A DNA stretch of 62,448 nt, filler included, from Choristocarpus tenellus KU-1152 (lineage: Eukaryota; Protista; Phaeophyceae): the NCBI GenBank assembly GCA_964200185.2. It is 10 parts of 10 records of this genome, joined end to end, with 100 filler letters (N's around TTAATTAATTAA, not from the genome) between each part and the next. Parts side by side here need not be neighbours in the genome. Positions count along the whole stretch, not along the records: positions 49,319 to 55,537 come from CAXNAD020008654.1; 9 more parts are not named here. One strand, written 5' to 3'. Each line of letters begins with the position of its first letter. The stretch's first letter is position 1. The notes under the pieces were generated by a model. The model saw only the letters and a program-made list of their open reading frames with translations. It did not search any database and had not been told where the DNA came from. Position numbers and translations under genes: made by a program. Below, one piece after another: positions 2,458 through 56,300 of the stretch.

Positions 2458-2815
2458 AGTCGAGGCCCGCCGATCACGTACTGTTTCGGCGGTTACCAAT
2501 ATTAATTTTTTTTGAAAAGATTGCCCAACGACGATCAGCATATCCAATGAAAGCTCTTGACCCAAGCTATTTATTTCCACAAATAAATTCTTCGAGAAAA
2601 ATCGTTTTGGTCGTGATATTTATTCCGAAACATTTTCTAGGTTGTCCCGAATATACTTGGTTAAAATTTAATATTACCAAAATAATTTTTCGAAGAATTT
2701 CATTGCGAAATTCGATAGCTTAGATCAAGAGTTTACATTTAATATGCTGATCGTTGATTAACTGGTTGGGAAAGCCATAAAAAAAAATCAAGATCGGTCT
2801 GAGCCTCGAGGCGAC
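2458..2815. repeat. Foldback (long imperfect palindrome) element
   Basis: acgatcagcatatccaatgaaagctcttgacccaagctat (~2531-2570) pairs with atagcttagatcaagagtttacatttaatatgctgatcgt (~2715-2754). Inner arms aaattcttcgagaaaaat / tttttcgaagaattt also pair; centre near 2640. Confidence 0.75.
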
Positions 2816-3189
2816 TGCCAACATTGTGCCTGGAAGAAGGCAATATACATTCCTTCACAAAGATAACAAGGATCATCAAATAAAACAAAAACGAATAAGT
2901 CGAAGAAAAAAGAAAAGAACAGAAAAAGAAGGTGGAAGTGAAAAAAGCACAACCATCCAAGAATGCCACAAGGAGATGAGAACAATGAAAAAAAATCGAT
3001 GGATGCAAGAAAATGAACCCCAAAAGAGAGGACAATGAGAAAAAACAGCATCCAATAGACCGTGGCGTTTATGGAGGTGGTGGTGGTGGTGGATTGGGCT
3101 ACCCTGGCATAGTGCCGGTTTAGCATGGTGTTCATCATTAGCCACTCTGTTATGAAACTTATTGTGCCAGCAGCCACTCACTCATCATA

Positions 3190-4220
3190 CCACTTCCATT
3201 ATTTAGAGGTCTTGGTGTTTCAACCTTAGACCGTAATCTCAAACTTCGCAAGGTCGTCTTGGAGGCATGTTCAACAGTTCTTCTCCTGTCCACCTTGCTT
3301 TCGTTTTCCAGCACCTCATAAACACCAACACCTTAGGAAGTCGCTCATCCCCCATGAGTGCAACTGACCCGGTAAATATGAGTCTCTGCTTTCACCCAGT
3401 TGCCTCAATACTCTCACACCCAGTCTTCACAAGAGTATCTTTGTATAACAGGACGTGATCAGTGTGGTTCCGTTTGGGCAATCCAATTCAATCAAGGAAG
3501 AACTGGTGGTGATGGTAACAAAGCTTCAGAAATGGAGTTGGCGGAGTGTCCATGTCATATATCCACGTAACCGCCGAAGAGAACTAACTAGAAGTACCTC
3601 AGCCTTGAGCGTTCAATCTGTCATATACCATTTAGCTGTATTTACCAAACAATTTTTAGATCCTCTGGCTAATCTCGGCAGTGATTGCGGCTTTGTGATT
3701 GATGGTGTCCCAAGGTACACAAACTTATCAATCTGCTTGTAGGTCTGGTCCAGTGCCTGAACCTGCATGGTATCTATAGCCTGGTTAGGAGGCCGAAGAC
3801 CCATAGTCTCCGTCTTGAGTGGTGGTGACACGGTTACATAGAAATATCTGACCACCTCACAATCAATGTCACCATCCGGACCAAATCTCCTTGGGTCTTG
3901 GAGACATTGCCCGCATCATCAGCGTAAAGCATACCCCATAAGAGTCTCTCAAGTGTTGTCCCACTCCCTAGTGTTCCTCCTCCTCTGATCTGATTGTTTG
4001 TGATCTCTCTCTTGATGACAACACGATCCTTGGAATGGCTGGGTCAGAGGTGAACTCTTTAACAAACGTGCTTACCCTACTACAGTAATAATATATTGAA
4101 GAGATAGGATGAAGAGAACACCCTTATTGAAGGCACTGTTCAACCTCGAATCAGTCTGTGCACTCACCATCATTTACGCGACCACATGCCCTCATCCAAT
4201 CATGGGACTGGGGAATGACA
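3190..4220 (-). mobile_element. Decayed RTE-clade non-LTR retrotransposon, reverse transcriptase region
   Basis: Minus strand gives WMRAC...DGECTD, FEVEQxL, LWGMLYADDAGNVS (3901-3945, YADD motif) and QTYKQIDKFVYLG, with frameshifts and stops. Confidence 0.85.
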
Positions 4221-4830
4221 GAAAGGCTCTCTCTATCCAAATTGTATGTACTCCAATGATAGTGACACGTGGTTGAACTTAGGAGTGACAGATAAAAAAA
4301 TACAGGTATAGATATAAAGCCTTCCATTGATTGTGAAAGAGGGTGCAGATATTGAGCTAGGTTGGTCAACAAAATCGAGACGGCTGGAAAGAGGGAACCG
4401 AGCGAATCATCGTCACGCGGTGAACCTCCAAGAGACTGCGCCCAAAATGTCGGGGGCTCATCACACGGGAGTTTCATCCGCTCAATACGGTCTTCCGCAC
4501 CAGGTGGGCCATGTTTTACAATGATTCGATTTTTTGCATTGCCTCATTGGACTACCTTGCTACTCCCTTGAGATGGCTGGTGAGTGGAATGTTTTGTCCG
4601 CGTACCGCAATTCGATTTAATCCCGCAAATATGTTTCCGTTCAATATCACTGGTAATGACAATTTGGTTGCTCAGGGGGTCGAGTTGACTTGTAAATTTG
4701 GTGGAGGACTTTCGTGTCAACAGTTGCCCGTGACTTCGAGCAGCGATTTAGTTCAGAGCTTGAGATGCCGTATGCAAGGCCACTGACGTCCGATACCCTT
4801 AGAAAATGCACCTTATGTTCTACAAACAAT

Positions 4831-7800
4831 ATGTCGCCCAAATGGAAAGACGTAGGAGTACTGTTGAGACTGGATCCTCTTCCTCATCTGACTACCTCCA
4901 ACCCCTCCCTCTACACGATTCCCTCCTTGAAGGGAGAGGACCGAATGAAGTATGATCGACGGCGAAAGGACAAGGATCGGGAGCGTGTGGAGAAGGAACG
5001 TGTCCGGAAAGAGCACGCGCGCAAAGTGAGGAACCTCTCCACTTCTCACCTTCCCTCCCTCAGCTTTTCCATTCCTGGTTTGCCAAAAATAAGTCATGGG
5101 TGTGTGATCTGATGTGGCAGAATCTGGAAATCTAGAGTGATGTTGCGACTCATTAGCACTACATATTTTCGGGTTAGTTGTTTGGTGTAACCTTGGAGGT
5201 GTATTTTCTTGCCGTAATAGGAAGGTAGGTGGGATTGGTGTTGAGTCCTCGTGCGAATCGAGAGACCAATGGAGGCAAGAGGTTCTGGAATGTCACTGAA
5301 CAAACAGGCAACCATGGTGATGGGTTGAAGTTCAGAACAGTCTTGAGATAAGCCTGTTGAACTCTCTTTAGCACATGCATTCTGTGCACAAGACTGTTTT
5401 GTTTGAGACATGAACGCGTTACCTCACGTACTACCGTGTATGGCAGTTGTCATCCGTGGAAAAATATCCATTATCAGGATTATACCTGAACCATACCACA
5501 TGAAAAACAAAAACACTATTTGCTTTCACAGTTGATGAATAAACAGTCACTTAAGGAACAAAATTCATCCTGTGGTCGATAAGAATGACAAGACAAAGGT
5601 GCCGAATGTTGAACACTTGTTTGAAAGTACATTTGAATTGACAAACAGCTACAGCAGTATCCGGATTGAAGTTGAGGGCGGGGGGAGGGGGGGGGAGGGG
5701 TGATAACTGAATCTGTGCTGAATTTTTGGACCGAAGCATTCAGTGTTAAGGATATGCACAAGATCACACGAATCCATCATCCACAAAGGCTTCAGCCACT
5801 GTGCAAATGTTTTATGTTGAACCATACTCAAAGCTAATCTAAAATCATACTAGTACTTCCCAAAGTAACGAGTGAAAGTATCTTAGGGTTAGGGTACGGG
5901 TTTTGCCCTGTTTGTCCGTTTGTGTCTTGACTTCCCACGGGTTTTTATGACATTTTACCTACCCCGGAACGTTTCAGAGCAGGTAAAGTGTATACGTTAT
6001 GAAAAGGTGTATCTGGAACAAGGATATTGACATTTCCTAACAAACACGATAGCCAAAATTACATCAAAATGGCAACATTGGATTTTGGCCCCCAAATGGA
6101 CGCGGCTCTACCCTCTAAGATACTTTGACTCAACTGTTTCTGTGTCTGTCCATCTCATTAAACGCGCCCATCACATTGTCTGCGCTAGCAGGACTGCATT
6201 GCCTTTGTTTTTAATGCTGTTAATGAAGCAACTCTGGAGCTCACATCATCCTTGCATGGTGCTTTGTATATCTGATCTTCTGGAATCATTAACCCAATAA
6301 ACTATATATGTATCTATATTTGTTAGTTTATCCTTGGTGTGTTAATTATACCGCATGCTTTGTTCCAAGAGGCCAGCTACACAAACCAGAAATCTACAGG
6401 GTCTGTCAAAGTTTAGCCGCTTTTTTTAGCATACCTCTACAGTGTCACCTGTTTCTCTCCTCTCCTCTCTCCTGCACATTGCTGCTTCAACACGATGTCT
6501 CTTACCGCCGCTAGAAGAAACAATATTCCTCTGCAGCAGAGGTGTTGCATGACAAATGCATGGATATTCAACTCCCCTCTAGTAACCTCACCCTTGTAAG
6601 ACACTCCTAAATGTAGTCTGCACTTGTGTAGGAATAAGAATAAGTTGGTTGTTACTACATAAGGCCGATACCCAACCCGACTATTGCCCTCCTTCCTTTG
6701 TCCCCACCCAGGTCCTGGAGGAACAAAAGATCAATAAGGCCCGCCGTAAGTGGCAAAAACAGACAGAATTCCTTTGCACAATCAAGTTTCGCAATCAACT
6801 ACCTGATCCCCCCCTGGGACCCCATTTTCTTAACATCCCCATGGACCTGGATAAGTATGTGCACTATTCCCCCACCACTCTGGAGCGGAACTACAAGTGG
6901 CAGGTGAGACTCTGTGGCACTGCGAGGGGGGTACTACTGGTGTAGACTGTTTTTTGTGGGCGGATTTGTTTGGGGTGGGGTGGGGTGGGGGAGGTACTGT
7001 TGTTAATCGTAGGCTTTGGTAGTGTGTGTGCTTGGATGGTTTTCATGTTGGAAATGGAGGTATCAACTTGTTAGGTTAAGGGCTGTAGGTGCTGAGGTAT
7101 CAGACTTTTTGTTTGGAGAATCGGGTTTGTATCTTTTTGTTTCTCGTGTTGTGATCTGCAGGAAGTATGTTATGTATTTGTTGTGCTTGTTGAGGTCTTG
7201 TGAGAGGAGCTCTTGCCGTGCTATTTCCTTCTCTCACCTCCACATGGATTTTTTTGAGTGAGCATTGAGTGGTTTCTCATCTCAAGCTCAAGAGGCATGT
7301 GAATAAAGGGAGGGAAGAAGAGAGGGAGTACTCTAATTGAGAAGTCCAGGAAGATTGTTTTTGGTAAGGGAGTGAGAAAATGTAAAAGATTAGTTCCGGA
7401 TTGCTTTTTCAATATATTTGAACTAGGTGTGTTTTAAGTACTCAACTAGATGGCACCTTCAGTCCAATTGTTGCAGTATTGTTGACGCTACCATGACTAT
7501 AGTGTGAATAGAATTGAACACTGTAAAGGTGAATGCCTTGGCATTGACTGGTGTGAGTGGAGGAAGTTGAGACAGGATGACAATGAGCCTGGTGATAGTG
7601 ATACTTAGGTCTTGAAGGATTGTGGTGGGTGTTGTGGTTGACTTTTATAAAGGGCATCTTTCATATGGTTTGACTGCATGAAATCCCTTAGTCATTGGTG
7701 CAAACTTCGAATGGCATTTGAAATTTGAAGCGATATGTCTGCTCACAAGATGACACGCTATGCATTATACACCCAAATGCGATGTGCTGCTACTAGCCCT

Positions 7801-16471: not shown

Positions 16472-19400
16472 ATGCTCTTGACTCTTCGGAGAATTCCCAC
16501 CCTTTCTAGCGAACGTAGTTTGTCAGTTATGCAGCGAATCGCTATGAAATCAAGGCGGTTTTTCTCTTTGCGGGCTGCAGAGCCAGTGCGCCCATCAACG
16601 CTTTCCGAGTTGCCATTCTTCCCCATGGACGATCGAAGGGGTGTTTGTGTTGTTGGTGCTGGAAGAATGGGGATGATCAGGGCTGGGGGTGTCTTGAGCA
16701 ACCCGGGTACCATCCTGACAGCTGTGGTCGACACTGATCGTGAGAAGTCAGTCGCGTTAGCCAAACACCTGTGCGTCCCTGCCTTCAGGTGACCCATCTG
16801 CACCTCAGTTTTGTCTGGCATGTCTTTTTTTTTTCCTCCCTCTTGCTCAGTTATGCGAGACTCCACCTGGTCTTTCCTCGACCAATTTTGAAGGGGGTGG
16901 ACAGAAGGCGCACCACCAAATCTGCCCTCAGTATAGTCTAATCCGACTCGTCGTGTCTGGGGTAGTTCTCATTCTCCCCCAACCAATGCATGAGTACCTT
17001 AACTAACTATACCTTCCTGGTCATACTTCGCAAATGACGAACTTTCTTAGATCACTGCAAGATGCCCTGGGAGATCCTCGTTGCGATGCTGTGTGGGTGT
17101 CAGGACCCACCCCATCCCACAAAGAGACCATCATACTGGCCGCCGAGGCGGGCAAGGCATGTGCTTACGTTAGGATTTATCTGTTAACTTGTATCTGTGG
17201 TTTTAATTTGATTACACGCTCTTTTGTTTCCGTCGTCTGCCCTTGCTTCATGAGGCATGTAGTTTGTCAGTGGTCCTAATTATTTTTTCTCTCTGGTCCC
17301 CCCGTTCCTGGTCTCTCAGGCGGTTGCCGTGGAAAAGCCTGTGGCAACCACTGTCGATGACATCCTGGAGTGCCACAAGGTCTGTGAGGCGAATGGTGTT
17401 CCACTCTTCTGTTCCTACCAAAGGTGAAGAACCTGTTCTTCACCCAGTCTACCTTCAGATTCCTTACGAAAACACACTGAAACGTAGAGGAGATATAGAT
17501 TGATTGACCGAGGAAAGAGTAAAAGAAGGAGAGAAGGATTATTCCTGTAAATGGTAGTTAGAGGAAGAACGACCACATTTCAAGCACAATGAAGTCTACG
17601 GTTCCCATAGTAGAGCTGGTTGGGAGTGAGGTGGTTTTTGGATACTCAGACAATGACTTTCACGAAGTAATCTAGACTTTTCAATGGACTACTTTTATCA
17701 TGGCAAGTCCTTTCGTCCACAACTACGATGAAATATTTTGCATTGCTCCACACCGCGCACCCTCTTGTCACAAAGGCACATTTTTTTGGACCTGAATAAC
17801 TGAAGTAGACCACCTCATTCCACACACCGTTGTCAACAAACCATTGCTTTGTTACATTGTTGACACTCTTCTGTCCCCTCACACACTTCCAATCGCCCCT
17901 CAAGCCTCCCCAACCCTGAACTGTCCCAAGTATCCTGCTCAAGCTCTAAAGTACATATTACTTTTGAAAGCTTATTTTTTCACAAGCACAACTGGATATC
18001 AAATGAACACCACATGCAATTGCATTTGTCCTGTATTGGACCTGATCATATTATGAATTAATGTTCTACCACATTTCATCCAGGCGAACGGACCAATCTT
18101 TCACACAGCTAGCAGCTGCAGTACGGGCAGGTGAAGTTGGACATGTTCGCTCTGTGAGGGCTGTGTTCCGAGATCACCCTACCCCGACATTAGAGTTTCT
18201 CAAAGAGGTGCGGTTATTGCAAAGAGATACGTAGCAGCAGGGGCATTGTGTTGCATGGTTAAATTGCAAATTTATGGTCCCAAAAAAGTCAAATAATGGG
18301 GAAACTTGAAGCACTGCTGGTAAGTTTGAGCATACATCAAATCTTCTTCCTAAAGATCAAAGTTTCTCTTGCTTGCATTGGGTTATCAGCAGGCCTTCCC
18401 TCAGAATATGAACTGCCTTCCTATTGACTTAGTGTGATGGGAATGGGGATAGTTCTTGCAGTCCTGAGAGAGCTCATCCATCATTCTATTCCTTGGTCAA
18501 TGAATGTGCAACAGTGGCAGTACATCAAGCTTTCATATGTGTAGCTGGCATACTGGCCCACTGAAAACTTGAGTGATATTGAAATGGAAGACATTTTTTT
18601 TGTGTGTTCTTTGTCCTTGGCAACATTTTCCCTCTGACTGCCTTTGTGCATCACTGTCCATTAAAATTCACCCTCACTTTTGTTGATAGGAGTGATTTTG
18701 TGAGCAGTCTTTTTGTGCATGCTGAACATTTTTGCACCACACCCCCATCCCACCCCACACACTTCTCTTTGCCTGTGTGCCATGTCCTTCCACACTAAAC
18801 ACAAATGTCGTGTGGGACCATCTTGACAGGGAGGAGATATATTCCACGACCTGGCGCCACATGACATCGATTTTGTATGCTTTAGTTTAGGCCTGGGTGA
18901 CCCCACTGAGGTGAGGTTGAGAGTACTTTTGGAGGGCAGTTTTTTCTTGCTTCATATTGCTAGGCCCAAGCCTTCACTCAACTGAATTAAGCTGGGTGCT
19001 GCTTATGGATCTAGGTATGATAAGCACAGTTTAGTTGGATACTTAAATCAGAGTTGTACCTCTTTGGACTAGGAAAGCATATTATGTGTAAGTTAAATAA
19101 TTCACTGAGATGTGTGGGACAACCATGTGTGTGGTGGCATAATTTGTGTGAGACAAAGACCCATACATTGTTTGTGGAGAATTGTCTTGAAATAGTGTTT
19201 GAGATTTTTAAAAGAGGGTAAATGAACAAATCATTCACTGTCTGCTAAGACAGAATCTATTGATCAAAGAAGGTGTAACCGAGCAGGAGTTGAACCCTGA
19301 ACATCGTTGAGTAGATTCTTCACGCAACACAGGTAGTTTTCCCTCTTATCAACTGATGAAAATTTAGGTAAAAACCATATGGACATCTGAAATAGACTTT

Positions 19401-22300
19401 TGTCAAGGTGTGCATGTTTGCAGCAATAGGAGTTGTACACCAGTATGACTCGAACTTTCCCCATGAACTAATTGATTAGTTGTACATCTGTAAAGGTTGG
19501 GTGGTATTAAACATTTAGCCACAGATGATTGAACAACTTTAAACATGATATCTGGATGTGTACCAGTCCCACTGAATTTTGTTGAGGGGGTCAGGGTTGA
19601 AATCAGAGACGGTAGGATTGGGGTGGGTTGGGCAGCAGCCTACTGGGAAAAATGTCCCTTTCGGTCATTGCTGCCATGAGAGCAGAAAGAACGCCCATGG
19701 TTGGTCGCTAATACAACAGTGTAGATGGAATTGCTGAAGGTTTAACACACTGTGTTGTGTCCTGCCATGATGTTTTGGCATCTTCTTGTCTGACCATCCC
19801 ATGAACAAAATTGGATGAATATTTCCGAATCTGGTTTAGACGAGTCACCTTGTGAGTGGTCCAATGGGCACTGTACTGTGCATCTTTTGAGTTGAGACTG
19901 TTGATCTGTCCCAGCTCCATGGTTAGACCCACTGCTGGGTGATGATATTCCACTGGATAGCCAGGTAGGTATCTCTTAGTCTTGTGTTGTACGCCGATTC
20001 TCTCTGGCATATGCCAAAATGTGGAATAGCCCCTTCCTCCATAAACGTAGATATGATTTCTTTTGTTGACATATCCTCTCCCCCTTGCCCCTCTGCCCCA
20101 GTCTCCTTCAAGTGTCATCTTTTGGGTATGTGACTGCCTTGTATTAGGGAAGACTCTTTGACAAATCAAGCAGCAACTACCAACCCACAAGTGCATCCCC
20201 CCCCCCCCTCCCGCCCCTTCCCCCCCTAGAGCACACAGGTAAGCACTTCCCCCTCAACTCACATTTTGGAACCCTTGTCCATGGCTTTCATCGCCTTTCA
20301 AGGTGTATGCCACAGCGACAAGCTTCCAGTCGGAGCTGGAGGAGTGTGGAGTGAAGGACACTGCTGCCTGCATGTTTAGATTCAGCTCTGGTGTTACCTT
20401 TACTTTGGAAATGACACGCAGCAGCGCCTACGGTTATGACAACCGCATAGAGGTGCGCTGCTGGATGAAAGGGGGTGGCTAGGTGTGGAGAAAGAGGGGG
20501 TAGTTGTTACCTGTGAGAACTAAAAAATGTTGGAATTTGACCCTTGAGCAGTGTTTTTGGGAGATGAAGCACATCAGGCAACGCATGGTGACTAGATCTG
20601 AACTGATTGTCATGAAGTTACTGTGCCTTATTTGCTTCTCTCAGATTTCCTTTGATGATGATGTTGTAGGGGCATTGCTCATTGCAGAATGTCATAGCAG
20701 TTCAGGAGGCTATGGTATTGCCCTGATAGATGTAAGGCTTATGGTTAGAACTGCTTCTTGGCTGGACACAGAAGACTGTGTTCCAATTTTGATTTTGAAG
20801 CACAGGTGGTAGATTTTATTTATGTTGAAACGTATACTTGCATCCATACCTGGGGATGACTTTTTTACCTCTTTCTCAAAACAATTTTTCTTTTTTTAAC
20901 AGTTGAATGGTACTTCACAGGTTTATATTGATTATGGGCCAAACCACATTTGTTAAGACTACTGTTTTTGATTAGAGCACTATGATATCAAGCATTGTTC
21001 GGGGAAGAGTATGAGGTGGGGTGAGGGCATGCTACTTTTGTGATTAGCATCTGGAGGACAGCAGTGATGGTTCATTTGCTTGCTGTTGTGCTTGTTTATT
21101 TCTTTTTCTTGGCTGTCTAAGGAGGGAGATTTTCTTAAAGGTCTGACATCATACAGTGTTTCATGACCTCCAATTTTGATACTTGACTGTAGATGGTAGC
21201 TGCAGAGGGTGGATATTGGTTTATTATCCTTAGAGTTTCCTTTCCGTTGTTTTTCCCTGTATAGTGTGATTCTATTTCTAGCAATGAGAAAGGAGTTGGT
21301 GAGGCCCCTGTTTGGATAATGACTCTGACAACTGGTGCATCATATGCATACTCCCTACCCTACCTCCCCTGTTTAAATCTATGCATCAGGTTCACTCCCA
21401 CGCTCAAGGCACCATGGAAATCCTTACGTCCAAAGCATTTTTAGCTCTAGCAAGGAAGTGATGTGTACTCCACGCCATCACACTCACCAACCTACCCCTG
21501 CATCTGCCCCTCTCCCCTCATACACTGCAGGTGGTGGGTGATAAAGGTATGCTCGAGGTGCTAAATCCCCCGAGGAACAGCTTGAAGTTCTCCTCAGAGA
21601 AGGGATGCACTGGGGGGCGTCCAGACCATTCCTTCCCAGAGCGCTACCGGCAGGTGTGAGAAATAGGTGAAAAAATGGTTTCTGTTACTGTGTATTTCTT
21701 TTCTTGACAGGCACTCCCTGGCAGCAAGAAAATGTAGGGTTCACAGCAGGGTTGGCAGTGCACAAGTTCTCTATGTTTTATTGAAGGATCTTACCTCATA
21801 TTCTGGGTTGGGGTTTGGTGTAGGGTTGAAGGAAGTCATTCTGCTGTGAGGCAACTGGGGTACCTTACCTGTTACCAGGCACATTACCACTGTGATGCAT
21901 TTTGTGGTTAGAATTTCCTGTGGAGATTTGCCCCCATCTCCATTCACTACTGTGTACACTACATCATCATCCCTCTGGTGTGCAAAGGCCCGACCCAACT
22001 CCTGTCCCTTCAAGTGCAAATGCTATGTTCAAAGCCATCGTCTTTCCCCACACCCCCCATCTCTACAGTAGGTCATGAACCCTGCCAATCTTTTCTCAAG
22101 TGATAACTTTTGCACTATATCTTTCCACCACACAGGCCTACATCTCTGAGGTTGGGGCCTTTGAGCAGATGATTCGGGGCCTCGCTGAGCCGCCTGTTAC
22201 ATGCATTCAGTCATGTCACACCTCTGTCATTGCAGAGGCAGCTTCGCAATCTGCAGCGACAGGAGGCCCTGTCCGCATCTCATTTGATGGGATCTGCTGA
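16472..22300 (+). CDS. Gfo/Idh/MocA-family NAD(P)-dependent oxidoreductase, myo-inositol 2-dehydrogenase-like, with a probable mitochondrial presequence
   Basis: Exons 16472-16788, 17051-17156, 17320-17423, 18084-18207, 18830-18910, 20303-20452, 21531-21653, 22136-22300 splice in frame. Motifs: VVGAGRMG (Rossmann), AGKAVAVEKP, YQRR.D, GGDIFHDLAPHDID, YGYDNRIEVVGDKG, FPERYRQAY..E. The start Met is uncertain. Confidence 0.92.
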
Positions 22301-48700: not shown

Positions 48701-49617
48701 AATTAAACTCAAGCGACTATTTTCCAACTTTGAGCAACTCAAGAAGTCAAAATAGGAAAACATGAAGAGGGCAGGGCGTCTATATGCCTGGCACCAAGAA
48801 GGTCATGCCATAGCTGTTCGTACACTTAATAACATGCCCTGACATCAGATATGAGGAGCTCAATTGGGCAATCATATCTTCGATGGCTTACCTTCACTCA
48901 GACCAAGATGGGCATGATAGGGTATTGGCAATGCACGGCACTGTGACGAACTGAACTGACATGCTGCAAGGTCCTTGGGACCAGCTGAAAACGGCTCCAA
49001 ACGAAACCAATGTGAACACTGCTTAGAAATGAACCATCAATGACGGAGGGTGCAATTCATACTTGGATGACGAGTCACCTACAGCACGCACGCCTGGGAT
49101 GGCACCAGCTAGAACATTTCTGCCACCTCCACCTGGTGGGAATAATAACCACGGTCATACACTGAACAACATGGTCAACAAGAAGATCAACGTATCTTAG
49201 GGGGGGGGGTGGTTTGTGNNNNNNNNNNNNNNNNNNNNNNNNNNNNNNNNNNNNNNNNNNNNTTAATTAATTAANNNNNNNNNNNNNNNNNNNNNNNNNN
49301 NNNNNNNNNNNNNNNNNNATCCTTGTTTTCCCCCCTACCTACCCCCCCCCTCAGATTCTTTGGGTCACCTAGTCTGACCACAACCAGTAAGTACACTTTC
49401 CAATGTCTATGTGGACAAATGTCAACATTCTAACATGGAACTGAGAAACGACTGAGATAATCTTCCCAGGCACTTTGAACTTGGTAAGCACAGCCAATAG
49501 GAGATCGTGACCAAAGCATTACGTATTTTCCATGAGTCAAAATATTGCATGAACAAAGGGACATTGTTTTTCCCGTTGAGATCCTGGAGGGCATGTAGGG
49601 TGCACATCTTGTCCAAT

Positions 49618-49878
49618 GAGCCAAACAAAGTAGATGAGAGGTACCCAGATTTTTGACGTTTTGCACCATAAGGCAGGTTTTCAAACTTTTGCAATTCACT
49701 CATATTTGTATGGATGAAGTGCTAAGTTTTGCTCGACAGGGTTGATTTCTCTGTTGTTTGAAATTTTTTGACGAAATTCGGATAATATAGTACATTTGTA
49801 TTAAAAAATCGAATTTTGCACATATTTGTTGGCATCCTTAAAACGCAATTCTGGGTACCTCTCATTTATTTTGACTCA
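49618..49878. mobile_element. MITE-like element family C with GAG(C/T)CAAA termini
   Basis: tgagccaaacaaagtagatgagaggtacccagatttttgacgtttt pairs with aaaacgcaattctgggtacctctcatttattttgactca. Confidence 0.7.
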
Positions 49879-49879
49879 A

Positions 49880-50620
49880 AGTCAATCATCAAGGTTAGAA
49901 ACAACATTGTTACCCACGGAGAATGTTTCGCATTCCAGGTAATCTCCCAGCAATTATTTGTGCAACAATCTTGAAAAGCCCCTTGCCACTGTTTGACACC
50001 AACGAGATTCCCCTATAGTCAAATCAAACCATGTGATCCTATTTCTTGTAGAGTACCTTGATGACTGCATCCTTCCAAACCTGTGGCGCATGTTCCTGGT
50101 CCCACATGGTCAGCACAATCTTGCGAGAACCCTGGAGGATAGTTTGGTCCTCGTTGAGTCCAACTTCAAGGATTTCAGCCTTGAGACGATTTGGACTCAT
50201 TGCCTTCCTGTTTTTCATGGCCCAGATTGCTTCACCCGCTTTCAGCAGTGTTAAAAAAAATGCTGGTGAATGAGCGAGTGTCAAGTAAGTGGATCATTGG
50301 TTGAGCGGTTCAGCACTGTTGACGTTGAGGTTTACTAACTTGGCATTCAGGAGCACTTCAAAGTGTTGCCTCCACCATTTCTTCATGGTTCCTTGCTTTA
50401 TTTAAATAACCTATCAGATTTGTCGTAGATGTATCGGGAGACCCTGTGCCTGGTCCTCTCTACCTTGAACCCTTTCAGATGTTGGCAGAAACCAGCATGA
50501 TCCCTATGGTGCATTCAGTTTACTATCTTCATTGTGTAGGTGCCAAGGAGTCCCTGCATGGTGTACACCTTCATACATTTAAGCTGTTTGCCAGTCAATT
50601 TCGACACCTATTTGATGGTG
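49880..50620 (-). mobile_element. Decayed RTE-clade LINE, N-terminal RT region
   Basis: Minus strand gives WRQHFEVLLN, AIWAMKNRKAMSPNRLKAEIL, PQVWKDAVIKVLYKK and YRGISLVSNSGKGLFKIVA. Confidence 0.85.
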
Positions 50621-51664
50621 ACATTTGCGGGTCTCTACACTAATTGCAGCCATACCCATTCCCACTCCTCCCAGACCTTCAAGAAGCTTGCTTGAGCTTG
50701 GTCACTTGCACACCACCCTCCAAGTAATACCTTCTGTGTGTGGGGTGCCAGTACTTCCAAAGTGTCTTCTATGAAATAGGATGTGTATGAAGTTGGAATG
50801 ATTTTGACATCCGTCATCACACCACCTGTTGTGTCTTTGGTTGTCAGTGGTTCTTCTGTTGACAGGATTTTTTCCGTAACCACTCCCACCAATTCAAGGG
50901 TCAAAATAGACATTAGACCTTATCGGTTAGGGAAAACACGTCTCTCGCAAGCCTTCCGATATTTGTTCGATACCGATACGATACGGTGATCCGATTTCGT
51001 TGGAAAGTTCAATTTCAAAGTGTAAACCTCGCCTTGTCTCTTGCCCATTGCTGCAAGCACCACCCCATTCGTGCCATTCGTCGCCACGGTTTGGCCATTT
51101 CACATAGCCAAGTTGATCTCTCTGTTGTTCCAGAATCCCTGTTGCCCTAAGTCAGATTGTGTATGAGGTACGAGATGGTCCCTCCTACTGTCTCTTGCTT
51201 TCTATACTTCCTTCCTCCTTTGCTCTGGCTTACCTGCGTTCACGCCTTACTTTTCGTGCCAAGGGAGAAGCCATCCAGCAGCTCGTCAATAACGGCAACG
51301 TCCCTACCGTTGACAAATCCGGCGGATAGTCGTGTGGAGGCAAGAAAGTTCCGATTTCACGTTTCTATGTACCAGGCGTTGTATGACTGCCAGGTTTCTC
51401 GCCATCCTCCCCCCCAACCCATTCATGTAACCATCCTAAATGATCAGGGATGAATATAGTTCTGAGGAGGAGAGAGGCATGGTCATTTTTATGATTTTAA
51501 TTTATAAAGTCAAAGCAGTCTTGCTGCTTGTGAGGACTTAATTGGTTTGTTGGTGTGAACTTGGATTTTATTTCCACTTCATACTTTCAAAACTAAAATT
51601 CGTGCGCGTGGCGCGCGGTGATAGGTTGTTTCCTTGTATAGGTTGATGAGAAGCACACTATCAC

Positions 51665-53305
51665 ATGAGTTCCTCAACAGCACGACAGACAATGGGAACG
51701 AGGAAGAGGTCTCGGACTCTTGTAGGTAGCTTCGCGGTAGTACTAGTCGTGTGTGCGCAATGCACTAGTGCCTTTATCCCAGTGGTGTTGTCGCCGAGAG
51801 CAGGGTTAAGGAGGATGGTGCCTGGCGTTGTGGAGGCGAAAGGTTTTGGAAAGGGGAAGACCTCGCCTCCTCCAGAGGACGCACGTCCGAGGAAAGTGCC
51901 TATTTCAGCACCTACTTCTCCCGAAGTGGGTCTCTGGGAGAAGGAGTACAAGGCTTATATTAACAGAACGGGAGAGTACCTCTGCTCCATGTCGTGGGAA
52001 GGACATGAAAAAATGGGACGAGGGGCAATTTTTGCAAATTATGATGACGCAAGGAAAGATTTGAAGGCACCAAACAAAGTAAGGGCTTGAGAAATGAAAA
52101 ATGCAAAAAAAATATGCAAACGCAAAGTCCTACAAGACAGAAGTTGCCAAACTGCTTTCCATATTCCGATGTACCACTTGACGCCTCGCACTCGTACAGG
52201 TGGAGATGCTGGGCGGGATCCCCTCGATGTACGTACCTTTAAGTGAGTTTGAGAGCATGCAAGGGGCGAAGGAGGATGAAGCTAATGACCTTGCTCAAAT
52301 TATTAACAGGGTTGAAACCTACAGGCCCGAGAAGGAGTTCGTGGTCGTGTTTCAGGCAGCTGGTGTCATGGGGTAAGGAATTAGTTCGTAGCGGATGCCT
52401 TTGTGTCCTGAACATGCTGAATATGTGTTATTATCATGTGCTCATCTTCTCTAGGGCTGTGGAGTCCGGTTATTCTTACCTCCCTACCTTAGCTAGCCTG
52501 GTTGTGGGTTGTGTGTATTGATAGTGATGCTGGGGGAGTTGGTGTTTGTCACTATCGTAATTATCACTATATTTTGAGACAATTTTTGTTATATTAACAT
52601 TTAAATCATTCGCATTTTGCATGTCATTAAAGCGGATATTGAATTTTGCATTTACAGATTCAGGGATAATATTTGTTACTTTATTTCCCGTGTCTATTGA
52701 TGTTAATTCAAGATTTGTACTTTGAAAAAATTCACTGGAAGGTGTGGCAGTGCCCTCCGACGCAAACGGTGTAAAGCATTTGTATTGTTGCTTTGCATGT
52801 GATTTATTAAGCCATTCCCTTACTGAATGTACTGTTTGTATATCGCAGGCTGAAGTTGAGTGGATGTAGTATGCAAGAGGATTGCACAATGGACATAATT
52901 TCTGTAGCGCATGAAAATCCCACACAACATATAGACCCTGGGACCTGGATACTTGACACTGGCACCCTGTCCATCACATATGAAGTAGCCACTTGCTTCC
53001 AAATTACTGTAGTTTCTGGAACTGTTTCCCATTGATTAGTCCTCCAACTCAAATAGATTTTTGAATTGCACATTCTCACTCAACCACCAATGTGCCATAA
53101 CCCACCGGACGCAATGCCCTCAAATCTTTTCCTTTTGATCATCCCAACTTGCAGAACGGACGTTGTAAAGCCGAGCATTAGTCCACCAGAAATGGCCAAG
53201 TACGTTGTGAGCCAAGAGTCGGAGCAGGACAAAGAGGTCGTGGAAGGAAGCAACAATATTGTTGGAGAGGATGGGGTCATTGATGTCACTCCAATTGAAT
53301 TGTAG
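51665..53305 (+). CDS. Plastid-targeted protein with a CcmS-like domain
   Basis: Exons 51665-52078, 52200-52372, 53155-53305 with canonical in-phase GT-AG junctions. Signal peptide ends CTSA-FIP (ASAFAP-type) followed by a basic transit peptide. Core WEKEY...LCSMSWEG...GRGAI...MYVP...LAQIINRVETYRPEKEFVVV...KPSISPP. Gene structure is confident; the family call is an inference. The start may be 51692. Confidence 0.8.
52550..52737 (-). pseudogene. dapE: Bacterial dapE (succinyl-diaminopimelate desuccinylase) gene fragment inserted in an intron
   Basis: SEFFQSTNLELTSIDTGNKVTNIIPESVNAKFNIRFNDMQ matches the alphaproteobacterial DapE dimerisation-domain pattern FQxxNLExTxIDxGNxxxNxIPxxxxAxFNIRFN. 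47 of 180 bases are G/C over 52561-52740. Confidence 0.85.
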
Positions 53306-56300
53306 GCAGGCAAGAGGGCAAGAATACGCCTTTTTGTTGTGAGAAGAAGTCAATGACGACAGGGATTTTGCGTCTTGTTCATTCTTTAGTTGTATCCTCA
53401 CCTTTGCACTACAGGAAGCAGAGCACAGTCCTGCAAATCGAAATACCTCTACTATTACATTAACCACTAGCGGAGGAGAGAAGAAGGCACATTATTGATA
53501 GGGAAACCCCCTGCACTTGTTCGATGACTTAACTAAAGATCATCTGCGGATGTTATCTATGCTGTCATGCAAGAAGAGATCTCACCGCGCGCTTGTACAG
53601 TCTTCTGATTGACCCCACAAACTGCTTATTTGCAGAGTCCAATCCTCTCTCACTTCTATCTCTATGCATGTTGACCAGTACAAGATTAAGTACACCATGC
53701 CCTGTTTCATGAAATACGCCCAAATTTGGGCATATAGTCAATGCACCAGATGCTTTGGTGGAGAGGGGCCCATGCAATGGGCGGAGGAGAATCATACACT
53801 AACCTCGTCAACTCTAGCAACAGGCATATGCACCAGCGCCCCTGTGTTTGTTTCATATACTGATCAACCATCTGGACTGACTTCAAGAATGTTGCTGTCC
53901 TGTTCCAAGGGGAATATATAAAGCTGTTCTTCCTCCTGTTTTTGCCTTTGCAGCGTGTAGCAATGACAGGACAGTGAATATTGCTTAATCGAAGGCTCAA
54001 AATGGCAGTACTACCACCAATAACATAACATTTCTGTTCTTCAGTTATATACTGGCCCTTTGCAGTAGAACATTTTCTTACATGTTGACTTCGCTGCTTT
54101 CACTGTCTGTGAGAGAGTAAGCAGCCCTTTGAGCTGTTCATGATTTTGTTTACCTTAGCCTGCTGGATCCTTTGCCTGCACAGTAGAAGAAATATTCAAA
54201 GCATGACTTGAAGGGGACAGCGTATTTCATAAATGGGATGGTTGATACATGGTGATGCAATATCAAGGTGTCCAGTGGAATTGTGCGCACTCGGGACCAT
54301 TTATAAGTTTCATTGGTAGTAAATGCCACACTTTAGGATCAGTGAGGTGGGAATGTGTGAGCACTATTTCAGAGAAAAATATTTCAAATCCCATAGCCCA
54401 CGAATTAGCTGTGCGGGTGTACAGTTCATCTGCAACTATTCGTCTCTTACCACCAATTGTGTATTAGCTAATCTGTGAAATTCAGTGTTTATGGATGTGC
54501 AAATCTTAACAGTTTCATGTATACATCATTTCTAGGAATGTGGATTCATGCCAATCCAAATGCCTGCCAGTTTGTGCCTGCAAATAATAAATTGGCAAAT
54601 ACTTGTACAACATTTGGCTGGTGTGGTGCCTCCTTGTTCCTCATTGTGTCCAGGGATTTTCTTTGTGAAGAGATTCAATTTCTGCTGGATTGCACCCATT
54701 TTTTCTTGAATGAACAAAATTCTGTATATTTGGGACATTTCTTGTGACTATGTTACAGGAGTAACATACAGATTTGTGCCAAATAGCGTATTGAGTAACA
54801 GTTTACAAATGTATTTATGTGCACATTAGAAGCACCCCTCTGAGAGTGTAGACGTGATCTGCATTCAACTCATTGAGTTGACCCACGTGTAGTAATAGAT
54901 GTCAAAAGCAAATTTATATAACAATTCCACCATTTTAGTTAATCTATCTTTACCTTAGAAAATTTAAGGAGTGATCCACTTAATCTTATTGTAAAATGCT
55001 TGCAAAAATATGTCATTTTTTTTTTAATATACATTGACAAGTGATGAGTCCCTTATATTGGATATAGGGTATGTTCATTTGATTTGTGGCCATCAGTAGG
55101 ACATGCATACCCCTCTGACTTGTGACATTAAACAACATCGAACGGTGTTTTTTATGGAGATGTAGATTTGTTACCAGAATTTCTTTAAAAGTGGACTTGG
55201 GGTAGCCCACATTTACTCCAAGAATGGTGTGGGGATGGGGTGATATTGCTGGTGTGTTTCTGGTTGAGTCGCAATAGGAAATTGTAGATATGGAGGGCCA
55301 CTGAGATAGAAACCTGATTCCACAATATTTCTCCAATACTCTATAGTGAACCTAAGTCAGACCATAATAAATCTATGGAGGTTGTAAATGCAAAAAGCAC
55401 AATTATGCAAAAAAAAATAGCAATGGAAAAGTCAGAGTACCTGAGGCTCAAAGTATCTGGGGGGGGGGGGGGGGGCCCACCACAGGGGGTCCATTACACC
55501 CCCCCCCACCACAAGGGCACTCAACACCCCCCTCCAANNNNNNNNNNNNNNNNNNNNNNNNNNNNNNNNNNNNNNNNNNNNTTAATTAATTAANNNNNNN
55601 NNNNNNNNNNNNNNNNNNNNNNNNNNNNNNNNNNNNNGGGGGGAGGGGGGTGGGTGGGTGGGAAATATACATGGTACCGCTTTTGCCTTGGGATTGTTCC
55701 GAATTTTGTTATTTGTTTATTTGTCTATTTATTTTGATTCTGTTGGTCGGAAGAATACAATGGAGTGGACTCTAGAGTATTAATATTATTATATGACACT
55801 TGTTGTAATTGTTGTTGTTATTGTTAGTATTCTTGTTCTTGTTCTTATTATTCTTATCCTTGTTCTTGTCATTATTATGGTTATTGTTATAGTTATTGTT
55901 ATTATTGTTAGTATTTTTGTTATTATTGTTATAGTTATTGTTATTATTGTTAGTATTTTTGTTCTTCTGTAGCGTTTGTAGTGTGGTCAGGTGATGTTTT
56001 CCGACTGATTTAATCGATAGGTTCAGACACTCTGTGTACAGATTTTTTGTTGTTGTGTTTGATGGGAAAAAGTGGTCGGCATCAACTCCACTCTGAAAAA
56101 ATAAAAGAAAGAAATATATCTATGTATATATCTATGTATATATTTTTTTCTTCTGTATTCCGTATTTTTTCTTATTTTGTGGACTTGGCAATGCTGCCTG
56201 CCTGCCTGTATGTGTTGTGTATGTATGTGTGTGTATGTATGTGTGTGTATGTGTGTGTATGTGTGTGTGTATGTATATATTATGTATTATGTATGTATGC

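Follow-up and report, generated by a model that had tools for sequence, protein, structure and literature searches.

A dapE fragment of Rickettsiaceae origin inside a spliced intron of the brown alga Choristocarpus tenellus

Introduction

How does a short, GC-poor stretch of DNA that reads as part of a bacterial dapE gene come to lie in the middle of an intron of a brown alga, and which bacterium did it come from? The locus was met in a 62,448-nucleotide stretch of Choristocarpus tenellus KU-1152 DNA, made of genome parts joined end to end. This whole stretch is called the window here, and all positions count along it unless a contig is named. The piece of the window that carries the locus is identical to the 6219-bp C. 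tenellus contig CAXNAD020008654.1 (GCA_964200185.2). An initial annotation, made from the sequence alone, had proposed that DNA of a Rickettsiales bacterium had recently been inserted at 52550-52737 into intron 2 of a brown-algal gene. It had also suggested that the closest taxon be sought by BLAST and that both junctions be checked for sequence spanning them.

C. tenellus is one of the earliest-branching brown algae, and Choristocarpus and Discosporangium are two genera of one early-branching brown-algal group. Movement of Rickettsiales DNA into the host nucleus is well known from arthropods and nematodes; among algae there is one case, the green alga Volvox. No report of such a transfer in brown algae was found in the literature searched, and the prior evidence for Rickettsiaceae in these algae consists of a few bacterial sequences beside algal data. 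The Phaeoexplorer paper attributes about 1% of brown-algal genes to horizontal transfer; it does not mention Rickettsiales, and its screen for horizontal gene transfer (HGT) excluded singletons and recent events.

Results and Discussion

Using blastn, the insert was aligned with JALZUG010000019.1, a contig of the marine Rickettsiaceae MAG GCA_023301685.1 (hereafter L001), at 97.8% DNA identity, with 4 mismatches over 184 bases and no gaps (Table 1). The aligned block agrees within 3 bases with the fragment initially delimited. Its composition is also as described at that time (~62 antisense codons without a stop, ~26% GC, more GC-rich flanks), since it comprises 61 codons at 25.5% GC, versus 48% and 44% in the 300 bases on its left and right, respectively. 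A 200-bp GC profile falls to 30% at 52519-52718, versus 43-49% around it, and the minus-strand frame is free of stops across 52540-52760. At the left border the identity to the donor ends abruptly, the donor continuation and the host flank sharing no base, and the change from bacterial DNA to host intron at the right border is likewise abrupt. Both borders are observed exactly.

Table 1. Features of the dapE insert and of its host gene, in window positions.
Feature	Positions	Strand	Description and evidence
dapE fragment	52553-52736	minus	184 bp, 25.5% GC; blastn, profile matches and tree
Left junction, host intron/bacterial DNA	52552..52553		base-by-base comparison; bridged by X1 and X2 contigs
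Right junction, bacterial DNA/host intron	52736..52737		base-by-base comparison; bridged by X1 and X2 contigs
Host exon 1	51665..52078	+	138 codons; ORF, X2 joint, Discosporangium homology from residue 10
Intron 1	52079..52199	+	121 nt, GT..AG; X2 joint 52078>52200, depth ~690
Host exon 2	52200..52372	+	X2 contigs; 72% amino-acid identity to Discosporangium
Intron 2	52373..53154	+	782 nt, GT..AG; X2 joint 52372>53155, depth ~600
Host exon 3, including stop codon	53155..53305	+	X2 contigs; 55% identity to Discosporangium

The insert covers codons 227-287 of the 377-codon dapE, which are part of the M20 dimerisation domain. The 149-aa ORF containing its frame matches Pfam M20_dimer (E 3.9e-10). 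The same ORF also gave matches to NF009557 (E 3.7e-15, profile positions 223-291 of 377) and TIGR01246 (E 3e-13, profile positions 219-286), two equivalog models of the proteobacterial DapE. The earlier assignment of the peptide to the DapE dimerisation domain is borne out by these three matches. The score of 56 bits lies far below the curated DapE cut-off of 284 for the full-length protein. The insert has neither a start codon nor a catalytic domain, and a Pfam search found no match to PF01546 (catalytic M20) in it. It is a fragment of a gene and not a gene. The encoded peptide shares 60 of 61 residues with the DapE of L001, and with E values of 2e-35 (tblastn) and 4e-86 (blastn, within the fetched loci) the match to a bacterial dapE is far beyond chance.

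The three-exon host gene would encode 245 aa. Intron 2 was recovered at the very coordinates initially proposed (52373-53154), with GT..AG ends and a spliced contig of the RNA-like library X2, and its splicing is thus observed directly. Within this intron the insert lies antisense to the host gene, with 180 nt before it, counted from the 5' splice site, and 418 nt after it, up to the 3' splice site. The end of exon 3 is also the end of the deposited gene model (2671-3987 on the C. tenellus contig), which starts at window position 51989 and has a 137-aa product. The longer 245-aa model is supported by RNA-like contigs, which begin no later than 51739, and by homology to Discosporangium from residue 10 of the ORF that opens at 51665. 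Exon 1 finds brown-algal proteins only (Ectocarpus, Discosporangium, Sphacelaria, Choristocarpus). As annotated, the host is a brown alga, given the identical C. tenellus contig and orthologs of the gene found only among brown algae. No Pfam family was found for the host exons, which were searched one at a time, and their look-alikes in the Atlas, scored below 0.9, are only a lead. The N-terminus of the host protein resembles a signal peptide followed by SAF, which we take to be similar to the plastid-targeting motif of heterokont algae, as a prediction only. In Discosporangium mesarthrocarpum (CAXNAE020000721.1; L087, 3854-5758) the ortholog keeps both intron positions, the intron sequences having no detectable similarity. 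Intron 2 of this ortholog (~630 bp) contains no dapE-like DNA; it does not align with that of C. tenellus and hence gives no precise empty site.

When each prokaryotic species was represented by one genome, 121 relatives were retrieved. The four best are all labelled Rickettsiaceae (97, 94, 87 and 80% amino-acid identity), and the next stand at ~50%. In blastn, the three Rickettsiaceae MAGs that come next after L001 (L002, L003, L004) reach 88.6, 82.8 and 78.6% DNA identity. The same 97.8% identity to the insert is seen in four additional contigs (L081, L082, L083, L084) that represent the L001-type bacterium in other samples, and one more contig (L085), recovered from a marine metagenome of Tara Oceans, is 97.3% identical. 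The best matches of the BLAST check proposed in the initial annotation are Rickettsiaceae MAGs, not a eukaryotic M20 peptidase. A search of 1.84 billion representative proteins with a 73-aa peptide gave a best match of 61% identity; these representatives stand for clusters at 50% identity, which hide close relatives, and the search gave the family and not the donor. The relatives are named only 'Rickettsiaceae bacterium' or 'Rickettsiales bacterium', and a literature search with the MAG accessions found no paper mentioning them. The L001-type bacterium is widespread at sea and has no known host. Its dapE recurs, identical or near-identical, in several metagenome assemblies that are independent of one another, namely GCA_023301685.1, ERZ23499811, ERZ27288634, ERZ17102814 and ERZ908362 / ERR599277 (L081-L085).

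A maximum-likelihood DapE tree was built that includes the insert fragment, Rickettsiaceae MAGs, Rickettsia, Midichloriaceae, Holosporales and free-living alphaproteobacteria. In it the insert and L001 are sisters (95/78), the end branch of the insert having zero length, inside a clade of 8 rows of Rickettsiaceae MAGs (100/100). A clade of 16 rows that includes the insert forms the sister group of Rickettsia (100/99). The donor clade excludes Midichloriaceae, Holosporales and the free-living alphaproteobacteria, and is itself placed outside Rickettsia proper in the DapE tree. The insert is of Rickettsiaceae origin at the family level, in agreement with the Rickettsiales donor first proposed, and it combines near identity to a bacterial lineage (97.8%) with a nested position in the tree (100/100, 100/99), as looked for in an endosymbiont insert. 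On the present comparison the donor appears to be a close relative of GCA_023301685.1, at species or sister-species level. The Megaira-like donor offered as an example in the initial annotation is only a lead. L001 carries a full DapE of 377 aa (454.8 bits with NF009557) in a normal bacterial locus with the order dapF, small ORF, dapE and tig. Near dapE, the donor-like MAG L081 has genes for an ankyrin-repeat protein of 903 aa and a patatin-like protein of 604 aa (3703-6414 and 19154-20968). Ankyrin-repeat and patatin proteins are typical of intracellular bacteria, and their genes are common in intracellular Rickettsiales.

Each of the four differences from L001 falls at a third codon position; three are synonymous. 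For the fourth, N281K, the alga has K, like the 28 other nearest DapE relatives compared, the exceptions being the L001-type P0283 and P0287; because the alga shares K with the other relatives, this change took place on the L001 side. The chance of four out of four at third positions under neutral decay is ~(1/3)^4 = 0.012. The third-position pattern therefore indicates that the differences mostly reflect strain divergence under selection in bacteria, and not decay in the alga. This pattern, the retained bacterial GC of 25.5% and the zero-length end branch point to a young insertion, a copy with essentially no decay of its own. The recent date initially assumed is supported by the 97.8% DNA identity and this same branch. 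As to the direction of transfer, it is from bacterium to alga, because the whole gene sits in conserved synteny in the bacterium and only 61 abruptly bordered internal codons are present in the alga.

Concerning the route of insertion, no flanking direct or inverted repeats, target-site duplication or terminal repeats were found, only chance-level matches of 10-13 nt. Comparison of the whole piece by blastn and tblastx with ~21 kb of donor-like genome and 80 other loci revealed no second donor fragment. A scan of viral contigs with a 35-mer common to the window and the donor gave no match and no sign of a viral vector. The low-GC patches at 49600-49950 and 54800-55150 have no NCBIfam match in any frame, and an Rfam scan of the piece gave no match. 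A transposon- or virus-borne insertion was considered and is not supported, as target-site duplication, terminal repeats and adjoining mobile or viral sequence were all looked for and not found. Because the insert has neither repeats nor mobile or viral flanks, it was probably captured during the repair of a double-strand break. Lysis of a bacterium within a cell of the alga's reproductive lineage would have released DNA that reached the nucleus, where a dapE piece would have been ligated by end joining into a chromosomal double-strand break. Such capture is known for organelle DNA and for Wolbachia DNA. NUMTs and NUPTs are short non-coding fragments that arise by end joining at double-strand breaks, are often intronic and have no target-site duplications. 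The C. tenellus insert resembles them in being without flanking repeats, whereas its donor is bacterial and not organellar; dapE is not known as an organelle gene, and organelle genomes have no known counterpart of the fragment. The fragment is transcribed in the pre-mRNA and removed with intron 2, encoding nothing. Since it leaves with the intron, no function is expected: the insert is almost certainly without function and most likely neutral.

We estimate at about 85% the probability that a 184-bp dapE piece of an obligately intracellular Rickettsiaceae bacterium was recently inserted into nuclear intron 2 of C. tenellus, where it has no function, probably via break repair. That the donor resided inside cells we infer from the obligate intracellular lifestyle of Rickettsiaceae. 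The insert could also be real without stemming from a resident endosymbiont. Its source might then be environmental DNA or a bacterium of a protist or epiphyte associated with the alga, or a vector, for example a virus, might have brought it in. The closest relatives all come from marine water-column or other metagenomes without a known host. No full-length donor dapE labelled Choristocarpus is present among the best 120 DapE relatives, and exact-pattern scans of JGI metagenomes with window-specific variants gave no match to the exact donor, no bacterium closer than L001 being found. However, it is general knowledge that Rickettsiaceae are obligately intracellular, their free DNA being rare, and that brown algae have walled cells and are not phagotrophic. 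The sequence is in no viral contig, and the insert is without viral or transposon flanks. In addition, sequence data of Nemacystus decipiens and Ectocarpus sp. 12 have yielded Megaira-group Rickettsiaceae (PMC10132079; bioRxiv 10.64898/2026.03.27.714854), which makes an association between Rickettsiaceae and brown algae plausible. Both these reports and the C. tenellus insert link this family with brown algae, the former through bacterial genomes or sequences beside algal data, the latter through integrated DNA. An origin other than a resident endosymbiont is judged unlikely.

A library or assembly chimera, with contaminant bacterial sequence fused to algal sequence in a read and carried into the contig, has less in its favour. 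The genome is a long-read assembly of a non-axenic alga, the contig is short (6.2 kb), and all supporting runs belong to one study. The locus is present in three runs of this study (X1, X2 and X3), probably from one culture, and X1 may be source data of the assembly; the support consists of Logan k-mer contigs and not of raw reads, with depth given as contig mean and not per base. X1 contains a contig of 5739 nt, with a mean word depth of 20.4, which extends over 51300-54000 and has the same structure and 0 differences. In X2, which is another sample and RNA-like, both introns are spliced at a depth of 600-690, and an unspliced 802-nt contig (52382-53183, depth 16.7) crosses both junctions, also with 0 differences. 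A 151-nt contig of X3 (52542-52692) includes only 11 host bases left of the junction and gives weak support. No contig skipping the insert was seen among those of X1, X2 and X3. The junction-spanning sequence that the initial annotation called for was thus obtained from two libraries, X1 and X2, and host DNA lies on both sides of the insert in one molecule in more than one library, as contigs of one study. Because contigs of X1 and X2 span both junctions and none skips the insert, a chimera confined to the assembly is very unlikely. A chimera would moreover rarely leave both parts of one intron collinear on either side of a 184-bp block, and we give little credence to a chimera of any kind. 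The unspliced contig of the RNA-like X2 also implies that the bacterial fragment is transcribed, antisense to dapE, within the pre-mRNA. Unspliced intron 2 amounts to ~2.5% of exon depth in X2. At window position 53557, a single X3 contig (depth 6.6) has G versus C in CAXNAD020008654.1, which may reflect variation between strains or alleles, or else an error.

Finally, the view that the fragment is left over from an old algal gene, nuclear or organelle-derived, for an M20 peptidase or DapE would be favoured by the M20_dimer match taken alone, but it is extremely improbable and was rejected, being contradicted by the 97.8% nucleotide identity to a living bacterial lineage, the bacterial GC, the sharp loss of identity at both ends, the tree placement, the lack of any close protein outside the bacterial family among the 1.84 billion representatives (best 61%) and the absence of dapE-like DNA from the Discosporangium ortholog intron.

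The closest precedent for a Rickettsiaceae insert in C. tenellus is the nuclear genome of Volvox carteri, where a rickettsial insert of ~9 kb, comprising a 16S fragment and portions of four genes, was reported in 2015 from several strains (PMC4324946). In both cases Rickettsiaceae DNA is present in an algal nuclear genome, incomplete and presumably non-functional, and the Volvox insert was read as the footprint of a past endosymbiont (PMC4324946), as that of C. tenellus may be. Unlike the ~9 kb of the green alga, the insert in the brown alga is a single 184-bp piece of one gene, is intronic, and has a far closer match in a known bacterial genome (97.8%). Transfers from Wolbachia to the nucleus of insects and nematodes, for example Drosophila ananassae, are similar in that DNA of intracellular Rickettsiales entered the germline nucleus of the host, and most copies are non-functional (PMC4299567). 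These cases differ in having animal hosts, a donor of the Anaplasmataceae, inserts of up to whole genomes and a symbiont that is usually still present.

Conclusions

An integrated and nearly undecayed fragment is a contamination-proof sign of intimate contact between a germline and a bacterium, and the insert described here ties a widespread, host-less marine Rickettsiaceae lineage to a candidate host. Whether C. tenellus hosts, or very recently hosted, an intracellular member of this lineage, known only from host-less marine bins, is in our view evenly balanced. If it does, an uncultured Rickettsiaceae lineage would gain its first host, and the symbiont may persist in culture. The insert also shows present-day uptake of bacterial DNA by brown-algal nuclei, and such uptake supplies the raw material for the ~1% of genes attributed to HGT. 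Its main value would be as the footprint of an unrecognised symbiosis in one of the earliest-branching brown algae.
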